Positions 27,901 to 31,102 of a DNA stretch of 64,000 nucleotides are shown here, one piece after another (positions within the stretch are counted from its first letter, which is position 1; each line of letters opens with the position of its first letter). Under the pieces are notes generated by a model. The model ran no database searches. It saw only the letters and a program-made list of their open reading frames with translations, and was not told where the DNA came from. Made by a program: the position numbers and the translations under genes. The stretch comes from Blastocystis sp. Blastoise (taxonomy: Eukaryota > Protista > Bigyra: Opalinata): the NCBI GenBank assembly GCA_039096225.1, contig JBBPEB010000023.1, positions 62,001 to 126,000 of the forward strand. Reading direction: 5' to 3'.

Positions 27901-30900
27901 ATGAATTATATAATTGATGTATATTCTATAAAAAAATAATAAAAATAAATAAAAAAATAGATAAATAATCCAAAAGGAATTACTTCAGTAGAAGCTTTAG
28001 GTGGTAAAGGATGTTCATTAGTGAAATTGAGAGAAGGAGGATTTCCTGTGCCAGAAGGATTTATAATAACAACAGATGGTTATCGTGTATTTGCAAATAA
28101 ACTAGAATTAATTAAGAAATATTCTGATATTTCGAAGCGAAAAACATTTACTTTAGAAGATGCTGAGATGATAAGTGATGAGATCTATGAAATATTTTCT
28201 AAAAGTGTTTTTCCTGAAGAATATAAAGAAGACTTATTATTTTATATAGAGAAAATGAAGAATAATTCGTTATTTGATATTAATTTATTAGCTGTTCGTT
28301 CTTCTGCGACAACAGAAGATTTAGGTGATGCTTCTTTTGCTGGTATGCATGATACACTATTGAATGTGCCAATAAATAAAGAAGATATTGAGAAAGCTGT
28401 TATACAATGTTGGTCTTCTTTATATACTCCTCGAGCTATTTTATATCGATATGAAAAGAAATTTCCTATAATAGATACTTCAATAGCAGTAGTAGTTCAG
28501 AGAATGGTTCCTTCTGAGAAATCCGGAGTTATCTTTTCAAGTGATCCTCAAACAAGTTCTAGAGAACATATTTCTTTAGATGGAGTAATAGGATTAGGAG
28601 AAGCCTTAGTAAGTGGAATGGTAAGTACAGATCATTGGTCTATTCGTAAACATTATCCTATATCAAAGAAGAAGACAGAATTAAGAATAGTTGAACGAAC
28701 TATTAATCATCAATTATTTGCTTTATATACAAAGAAAGAAGGAGGTACTGAAAAGAAAGAATTAAAAGAAGAAGAAGGAAAGAAAGCTTGTTTTAATGAT
28801 AATGAAGTAGGTTGAATTTATTTTATTTATTATGTTTTTTATTTATTATTTTTTAATAATGTAATTAATTTATTATTATTTTATTTATTTATTATTTTTT
28901 TATTATTTTATAATAATAAAATTATCTTTAAATAGATTTATATAATAAGTCAATATGCTGTAGATATCGAGAACTATTATAAGAAACCAATGGATATAGA
29001 ATTTTGTGTATATAAAGATCATTTCTATATAGTTCAAGCAAGACCTATTACAACTTTATTAGATTTACCTAATGGTATATAAAATATATATAATAAATAT
29101 AATATAATATAATATATAGATTTAAATCCATTATCAGATGAATATAAGAAGATATATCATCATTTTATTGATTTTAATTATATACAAATGTTAACAGTTC
29201 CTTGGACTTATTGTAGTTATAGCTGTATTAATAATATAATGTTAAGAAGTCCTACGTATGTTCGTTGGATAGGTGGATTCTTCTTTTTAGATTTAGCACC
29301 TTTAATGAAGATATCTATATATAGAAAATTCTTTTTAAGTTTTTTTGGAGGTAATGTTGATAAAGAAATAGCTTATGTATGTATATATATATATATATAT
29401 ATAATTAATAATATATAGATATCTGATGAATATAATAAGAGTGAGCTTCCTTATTATTCTTCTAGTATAGTAATGAAACCATTATTAAAGACATTATGGA
29501 CTATTATTTTACCTACTGTTCGATCTCTTCTATGGAATTGGATATTTACTTTTAATCCTTCTCGTCTATGTAAAGAATTAAAAATGAAGATTGAAATGTT
29601 ACTAAATTATCATAATAACTTAATAGATGAATTAAAGAAAGATAAGAATACTATTACATTAACTTCTCTTCGTGATACACCTTATACATTAATATATGTA
29701 GTAAAGAATCTTCTTCCTCTTATAATTGTTTCTATATTATCTCGTCATAAGATTAATAAGATTGTATTAAAATATGGAATAGAGGAGAGTGAAGTAGAAC
29801 GAATGGTAGGAGGAAGAAGAGAAAATATAGCAAGTCGAATGGATTATGCAATTACTCAATTACATTTATTATTTATAAAATGTGAAGAAGAAGAAGAAAC
29901 TGGATTTATTGAAAAGTTATTAGTATGTTTTATTTTTTTTTATATCATATTATTTTTATTATATATTATTTATTATATATTATTATATTATATTATTTTT
30001 TTATTTTATTATTTTTATATTATTATAATTAATATACTTTTATAATAATAAAAAATATCTTTATAGACTTTATCAAAGAATGAAGAAGAAGAAAGAATAA
30101 AACAATATATGATTTCTTTATCTGAATCTCCTCTATCTTCTCATCAACAATTATATATACAATGGAATGAATTTATGAATATATTTGGAAGACGAGGTCC
30201 TGGTGAAATTATGATTAGTTCTCCAAGATATGAAGATAAACCTTCTATTTTATTATTAACAATATTAAATACTTCTTATGAGAATGTAGAAGAGAAATCA
30301 CCTGATTATTTAGAAAAGAAAGCAGATGAAGCTGTTGATGAAGTATGTATATATATAATATTATAATAATACTTTTTAGATATGTTCAAAAGTATCAAAG
30401 AAAGATGCAAAAGCAATTCGTTATTATTTACCTGTTGCTCGATTATTCTTTACTTATCGAGAACATCCTAAATATATTATTATTTCTTTATTATATTGTC
30501 AACGTAAGTTAATTATACAATTAGGTCATAAGATGATGAAAGAAGGAATAATTCATGATCTTCAAGACGTTTTCCATTTCTCTATTGATGAATTATGTGA
30601 TTATGAACAAAATAAACTAGATATTACTAAAATGACTTCTCTTCTTCAACAACGTAAATCTATTTATATACATGCTAAATCTATTTCACCTCCTCGTATA
30701 ATTGTATCTCCTTATGCATCTATTGTCAATATATCTGAACAAACAAAACAAGAGTTATTAAATCTACCTGAAAATATCTTAAAAGGAATGCCTACTTCTG
30801 CAGGTATAGTTGAAGGAAAAGCAGTAGTTGTTTTAGATCCTCGAGAAGGACATTTAAAGAAAGGTGATATATTAGTTGCTCCTGCTACTGATCCTGCTTG

Positions 30901-31102
30901 GACACCTTTATTTGTACCTGCTTCAGGTGTTGTGATTGCTATAGGTGGTCCTCTTACTCATGGATCTATTGTAGCTAGAGAAATGGGTATTCCTTGTGTT
31001 GTTAATGTAAATAATTTAATGGAGAAAGTGAAGAATGGGATGAGAATAAGAATAGATGGAGGTAAAGGAACTGTTGAAATACTAAAAGAAGACTCCAATT
31101 GA
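27901..31102 (+). CDS. rph: Rifampin phosphotransferase-like enzyme (ATP-grasp, substrate-binding, swivel phospho-His domains), 7 exons
   Basis: Spliced start [65 protein letters not shown], middle-domain blocks [49 protein letters not shown]-terminal [29 protein letters not shown]. The His domain is C-terminal, unlike PEP synthase. Introns at about 27919-27960, 28807-28935, 29075-29119, 29376-29418, 29923-30066 and 30343-30379. Confidence 0.85.

Follow-up and report, generated by a model that had tools for sequence, protein, structure and literature searches.

An intron-bearing gene in Blastocystis sp. Blastoise resembles bacterial rifampin phosphotransferase (RPH), and this raises three questions: what kind of enzyme it encodes, whether it came from bacteria, and what it could be used for. 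The window, i.e., the whole stretch of DNA analysed here, comprises 64,000 nucleotides (assembly GCA_039096225.1, contig JBBPEB010000023.1, positions 62,001 to 126,000), and coordinates refer to it unless another contig is named. The genome is 33.3 Mb long with 23% GC, and the isolate appears to be the Russian tortoise isolate Rus-B of PMC12129017.

The predicted dikinase gene has seven exons on the forward strand. Joined, they give 2763 nt, i.e., 920 codons and a stop codon, and the frame stays open throughout. Exons were searched singly, and whole-protein work used the paralogue P0001 (WA158_007776 of Blastocystis sp. Blastoise), which is 98-100% identical to every exon of the window gene. 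The NCBI model, WA158_007763, is 1024 aa long because an upstream ORF is fused to exon 2 and exon 1 is skipped. We rejected it, since paralogues begin at exon 1 and a duplicated block starts downstream of the fused ORF. The stretch fused to the dikinase in that model, probably wrongly, lies at 26782-27251 and holds two short ORFs that overlap, neither of which has a Pfam match. The features are listed below, with residue equivalents numbered as in Listeria RPH.

27302..33691 (+): duplicated block of the dikinase gene and the downstream AAA ATPase gene; an inverted copy, 99% identical, lies on the same contig (G000:C32, ~132.4-138.5 kb)
27901..27918 (+): exon 1; six codons with ATG start; P0001 opens with the identical six residues
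27919..27960 (+): intron 1; 42 nt, phase 0; position common to paralogues, L021 and L023
27961..28806 (+): exon 2; ATP-grasp domain (PF01326) with K22, R117 and T136 equivalents; apparently homogenised between paralogues
28807..28935 (+): intron 2; 129 nt, phase 0
28936..29074 (+): exon 3; end of the ATP-grasp domain, with E297, Q309 and R311 equivalents
29075..29119 (+): intron 3; 45 nt, phase 1; missing, exact to the nucleotide, from the nearest copy; the ST7-like locus L020 has an intron at this position too
29120..29376 (+): exon 4; start of the substrate-binding domain; Q336 replaced by Ile, Y351 by Ile and V368 by Leu; Q337 and P356 retained
29377..29418 (+): intron 4; 42 nt, phase 0; missing in the nearest copy; position also in L021, L022 and L023
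29419..29922 (+): exon 5; region where the substrate-binding domain varies most; T523 replaced by Ala
29923..30066 (+): intron 5; 144 nt, phase 0
30067..30342 (+): exon 6; substrate-binding domain with the GRRGPGEI block
30343..30379 (+): intron 6; 37 nt, phase 0; missing in the nearest copy
30380..31102 (+): exon 7; encodes the apex helix and, at the C-terminus, the phospho-His swivel domain (PF00391); ends in the stop codon TGA
30458..30472 (+): R-E-H-P-K, equivalents of Arg666, Glu667 and Lys670; the third residue is His, which most non-RPH relatives also have there
30959..30961 (+): catalytic His codon, equivalent to His825 of Listeria RPH

All six introns are of the form GTA...TAG (GT-AG) and 37-144 nt long, their GC content is 4-11% (vs 24-31% for exons 2-7), and in each of them, reading on from the exon before it meets an in-frame stop (6/6). 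An independent profile-based spliced alignment gave the same six introns. Frame, intron composition and spliced alignment thus confirm the earlier note, which had described a complete enzyme with six introns in the host's style. Sampled words of the gene region were present at 0.50 in one probable RNA run and at 0.39 in one poly(A) gut metatranscriptome.

The gene's neighbours are eukaryotic (an intron-bearing AAA ATPase, bromodomain, Got1 and DUF4704 genes), and a genome-wide count gave 13 loci with this His domain, spread over eight megabase-scale contigs. Introns, loci and neighbours together exclude bacterial contamination, as had already been argued from the introns and neighbours. Two other genes in the window deserve mention. 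An intronless gene for a 557-aa MATE efflux transporter (23767-25440; best NCBIfam PRK09575, under its cut-off) lies 2.5 kb upstream, outside the duplicated block. On the reverse strand at 54553-57855, an open frame of 1101 aa has weak He_PIG and HRM matches, resembling Blastocystis Ig-domain surface proteins.

Exons 2-3 match PPDK_N, exon 7 matches the PEP-utiliser His domain, and exons 2-7 match NCBIfam NF004878 collinearly, giving the order ATP-grasp, middle substrate domain, C-terminal phospho-His domain. Equivalents of K22, R117, T136, E297, R666, E667, K670 and H825 are all present, all nine catalytic positions taken from PMC4844700 are retained in the window gene and in every intact copy, and P0001 carries PF27448 (Rph_4th). 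The closest solved structure for the exon searches was Listeria RPH, and an AF2 model of P0001 (pLDDT 94) matched RPH 5HV1 over its full length (E 6e-51, TM 0.75-0.81), as against partial matches only for PEPS and PPDK. Judged by these comparisons, the predicted protein is a member of the RPH-like small-molecule dikinase superfamily, and very likely works by that superfamily's chemistry.

The top family for P0001 is NF004878 (PRK06241.1-3), an uncharacterised group from Clostridium, Anaerolineae and Spirochaetes, although no family cut-off was reached: four paralogues scored 569, 518, 549 and 469 bits, below the cut-off of 945. This family gave the best model for exons 2, 4, 5, 6 and 7 as well as for the whole paralogue, and it has the R-E-H-x-K motif and its tree neighbourhood in common with the Blastocystis proteins. 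Identity, however, is ~30%, and the T523 position is Ala or Ser in all Blastocystis copies.

PEP synthase and PPDK also have ATP-grasp and His domains, but their His domain is central, whereas that of the window protein is C-terminal. The PF02896 pyruvate-binding domain of PEPS/PPDK is found neither in the window protein nor anywhere in the genome, and we therefore excluded a PEP synthase identity. Domain, family and structure matches all bear out the earlier assignment of this domain order to the RPH/PigC class. A wider alternative is that the protein does housekeeping work on an endogenous metabolite, e.g., as the "PEP synthase" of Blastocystis glycolysis, a name used in PMC6198282 and PMC3129679. 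Conservation across Blastocystis lineages, the NCBI family name "phosphoenolpyruvate synthase" and the crediting of Blastocystis with this enzyme in PMC6198282 all speak for such a role, which we nevertheless consider quite unlikely: PF02896 is absent, there are two pyruvate kinase genes in this genome, pyruvate is not an RPH substrate, and conservation within the protein is lowest in the substrate domain. What has been called "PEP synthase" in Blastocystis may in fact be this RPH-like dikinase family under a wrong name. The absent PEPS/PPDK barrel and the two pyruvate kinases also conflict, at least in this isolate, with the claim that PEP synthase replaced pyruvate kinase.

The same domain order and a similar His swivel occur in PigC and RedH, and exons 2, 3, 6 and 7 match the PigC model (NF052631). 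The protein could accordingly be a condensing enzyme of that kind, which activates a carbonyl with phosphate and joins it to a second substrate, so that the product would be a Blastocystis metabolite and not a detoxified compound. This is also improbable, since P0001 scores 332 bits against a cut-off of 1300 for NF052631, below the PRK06241.1 models, and 302 bits against 1350 for RedH (NF052632). Furthermore, the window gene has no adjacent pathway genes, there are no biosynthetic neighbours within the window, and the copies are scattered over eight contigs.

RPH itself (RPH-Lm, PDB 5FBS/5FBT/5HV1; NF041857) is alike in domain order, fold and the catalytic residues of both active sites. The earlier note had suggested rifamycins, or else another xenobiotic, as the substrate, and had cited five motif pairs, the catalytic His (GGPLTHG) and R-E-x-x-K. 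These are all present, but they are not diagnostic of RPH, since non-RPH bacterial relatives have them too; being superfamily-wide, they are uninformative on substrate. According to Stogios 2016 (PMC4844700), R-E-x-x-K is kept even in clade Q, a distant one, and an enzyme of clade N conferred no resistance.

The measures that do discriminate go against RPH. With the RPH model (NF041857), P0001 scored 447 bits (cut-off 999; Bacillus RPH controls 1489). Identity to RPH was 21-28% in Foldseek alignments, under the threshold for RPH clade A of >42% identity to RPH-Lm (PMC4844700), and middle-domain identity to a Bacillus RPH was 19%. In the phylogeny with RPH relatives, Blastocystis falls outside the RPH clade, and a joint clade of the two was rejected (p-AU 0.0034, to be read with a long-branch caveat and with groups named after the first tree was seen). 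The third residue of R-E-x-x-K is Tyr or Phe in 34/34 RPH-clade rows, whereas it is His in 8/8 Blastocystis rows and 37/60 other prokaryotic rows. We also compared the rifamycin pocket with that of Listeria RPH, scoring the rifampin contacts Q336, Y351, T354, P356, A357, M359, V368, L387, L478, F479 and M673. Only P356 is identical (1/11, with 478/479 placed by multiple alignment and less certain), and both hydrogen-bond donors of RPH, Q336 and Y351, are replaced by Ile.

By these sequence measures the predicted protein is not an RPH: it failed on family cut-off, clade and pocket alike, and these results do not support rifamycin as its substrate. Its gene also differs in being eukaryotic, intron-bearing and multi-copy. 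A true rifamycin phosphotransferase, shielding neighbouring or prey bacteria, would fit the nearest solved structure, the retained second-site catalytic residues and Q337, and a pocket that is still hydrophobic, in a family where the single RPH pocket changes Y351F and V368T cost little. Such an enzyme is nonetheless very unlikely given the scores, contacts and tree above, and pocket residues vary between paralogues, a pattern not favoured by one fixed drug. We think it likely that the main substrate is not rifamycin: the pocket is different and changes fast, and the enzymes therefore probably phosphorylate other small molecules. Because RPH tolerates pocket changes, the Blastocystis enzyme may, by analogy, have a rifamycin side activity.

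The next question is where the gene came from. In a careful 60-row tree (LG+G4), the Blastocystis proteins form one clade (100/100) among prokaryotic PRK06241.1-3-like proteins, and their sister is a Spirochaetes MAG protein (99/92) on a long branch; a 102-row quick tree leaves this placement unresolved. The top profile match is a Clostridium protein encoded behind a TetR gene. No named eukaryote other than Blastocystis appeared in the protein searches, in collections whose eukaryote sampling is incomplete, and every other named match was prokaryotic. The lateral transfer from bacteria that had been proposed for this locus thus holds up, and a bacterial origin of the gene is likely on this evidence, although the gut donor named in the earlier note gains no backing from the tree. 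Against it, one could suppose that there was no lateral transfer, and that the gene is anciently eukaryotic and other eukaryotes lost it, or that it is bacterial contamination. The Blastocystis branch is long (0.87, AT-biased), there is no close bacterial sister, the best bacterial identity is ~30-32%, and not all candidates are scored in the searches, all of which leave some room for that view. However, contamination is contradicted by introns, loci and neighbours, and the matches outside Blastocystis are prokaryotic throughout, so we regard absence of transfer as extremely unlikely.

Other Blastocystis lineages indicate when the transfer took place. The ST7 reference has the dikinase gene (L124, FN668639.1), where it is annotated as two proteins (331 aa and 556 aa) because two introns of 28-33 nt were missed. 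Metagenome contigs of 36-46% GC, which were assigned to Blastocystis by ST7 similarity and intron style, carry the gene with Blastocystis-typical introns of ~30 nt. Intron positions after residues 6, 288, 334 and 420 are common to these contigs and the tortoise genes, and one Blastocystis-type locus (L023) has all seven intron positions in common with the tortoise copies. All Blastocystis-type loci group together (100/100) in both the exon 2 and exon 7 trees. Shared positions and a single clade imply that the transfer and first introns are older than the split of these lineages; by this reasoning from sequence, the transfer is as old as the genus. The earlier suggestion of an old transfer with later introns agrees with intron positions being common to ST7-like and other Blastocystis lineages.

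Ten of the 13 loci in Blastoise are apparently intact, two on C19 are broken N-terminally, and one on C25 is altered catalytically. The copies draw on seven recurring intron positions, at which intron length varies widely. Among annotated paralogues, identity to P0001 is 48-94% in the ATP-grasp domain and 70-92% in the His domain, as against 35-62% in the middle domain, and mean identity between paralogues is 24-34% over residues 401-560. The copies also differ in how their exons are related. Silent differences between the window gene and L029 number 8/261 for exon 2 but 32/130 for exons 4-5 (p 2e-10), and in three further pairs silent change is likewise lower in exon 2 (p 2e-10 to 4e-3 over the pairs compared). 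In the exon 2 tree, L032 and the window gene form a group (100/99), but in the trees of exon 5 (99/96) and exon 7 (100/99) L032 joins L033 instead. This mosaic suggests that the ATP-grasp exon has undergone gene conversion, which would be expected to produce such a pattern. Positive selection on the pocket was unsupported in the paralogue comparisons, where pN/pS was <1 wherever unsaturated; the faster pocket change could instead reflect relaxed constraint.

Some individual members stand apart. L036 (G000:C25:760600-765900), the most divergent copy, has an unbroken frame, introns in common with the others and a retained His, but its R666, E667, K670, Q337, T136 and R311 equivalents are changed, making it a candidate pseudo-enzyme. 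P0205 (WA158_000087, G000:C1) is annotated at 1105 aa with an N-terminal SAP domain and is probably a fusion of neighbouring genes. Several proteins among the matches (P0008, which is actinobacterial, P0009, P0019, P0025 and others) are 1400-2650 aa long with several His-domain matches.

The inverted copy of the duplicated block on C32 lacks introns 3, 4 and 6 of the dikinase gene, to the base, as well as four AAA ATPase introns (31966-32003, 33004-33054, 33142-33185 and 33239-33293). All seven missing introns are 37-55 nt long, and longer introns are retained. Two causes would account for this, namely loss by way of cDNA, or polishing in which RNA reads were used; a poly(A) tail, sought at the C32 copy as a sign of retrocopying, was not found. 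A second near-identical pair, L027 and L028 (G000:C19), has stretches of 35 and 56 nt present in one copy only, and both members are broken in the ATP-grasp part.

Taken together, the reading we favour, and hold on balance to be probable, is a laterally acquired and diversified set of dikinases, shaped by gene conversion and differing in substrates, which would mainly be hydrophobic compounds other than rifamycins. By homology, the ATP-bound grasp domain would pass the beta-phosphate to the C-terminal His874, with AMP and Pi released. The His domain would then swing to the middle domain, where Arg-Glu-x-x-Lys would steer transfer of the phosphate to the hydroxyl of a hydrophobic small molecule. 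The history would be a single prokaryotic acquisition before the split of the tortoise and other Blastocystis, early gain of introns, and growth to the present loci in this isolate. Gene conversion would hold the ATP-grasp exon alike while substrate domains diverge, yielding enzymes with different substrates.

For such a set, the likeliest role would be to inactivate or tag compounds met in the hindgut, whether plant phenolics from the diet or natural products of microbes, with a range particular to each copy. Known relatives phosphorylate flavonoids and phenols (PMC13099321, PMC12167813), and plant-carbohydrate enzymes are expanded in tortoise isolates (PMC12129017). YvkC/BsPPS of Bacillus (flavonoids, polyphenols), HpeHI of Rhodococcus, CreHI and PpsAB (phenols) apply similar swivel chemistry to small hydrophobic hydroxyl compounds, which makes these phenol and flavonoid dikinases a functional model for a herbivore gut. 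However, the characterised phenol kinases are more distant from the Blastocystis protein than RPH is, HpeHI, CreHI and PpsAB are two-protein systems, and BsPPS has different catalytic residues (D627/H629/H630). Plant phenolics in particular are therefore named as substrates only tentatively. We also considered 25-hydroxy steroid kinase as an RPH relative, but that kinship was not borne out.

To our knowledge, eukaryotes seldom use phosphorylation for detoxification. We found no literature report of an RPH-like dikinase in Blastocystis or any eukaryote among the papers surveyed here. The ST7 HGT table has no PPDK/PEP-utiliser InterPro entry, and the dikinase family is not named in the text of Lind 2025 and the part of its supplements covered here. 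Lateral transfer into Blastocystis is already well known; what appears to be new is a set of 13 copies in one genome, whose catalytic domains are conserved while identity in their substrate domains drops to ~30%, and whose ATP-grasp exon shows signs of having undergone gene conversion.

A more far-reaching idea, which we rate as doubtful, is that a bacterial resistance-type scaffold became a eukaryotic repertoire for xenobiotic phosphorylation, with gene conversion keeping the catalytic modules uniform, substrate cassettes that can be exchanged and a copy number that follows host diet. If so, the single-type copies found in subtypes of humans and animals would act in the gut on polyphenols from the diet or on drugs, with rifamycins possibly among them, and phosphorylate these. 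Many copies with near-identical catalytic domains and differing pockets are a ready panel for substrate discovery in the large, uncharacterised RPH-like superfamily. If active, these enzymes would give the commonest gut protist a route for modifying small molecules by phosphorylation.
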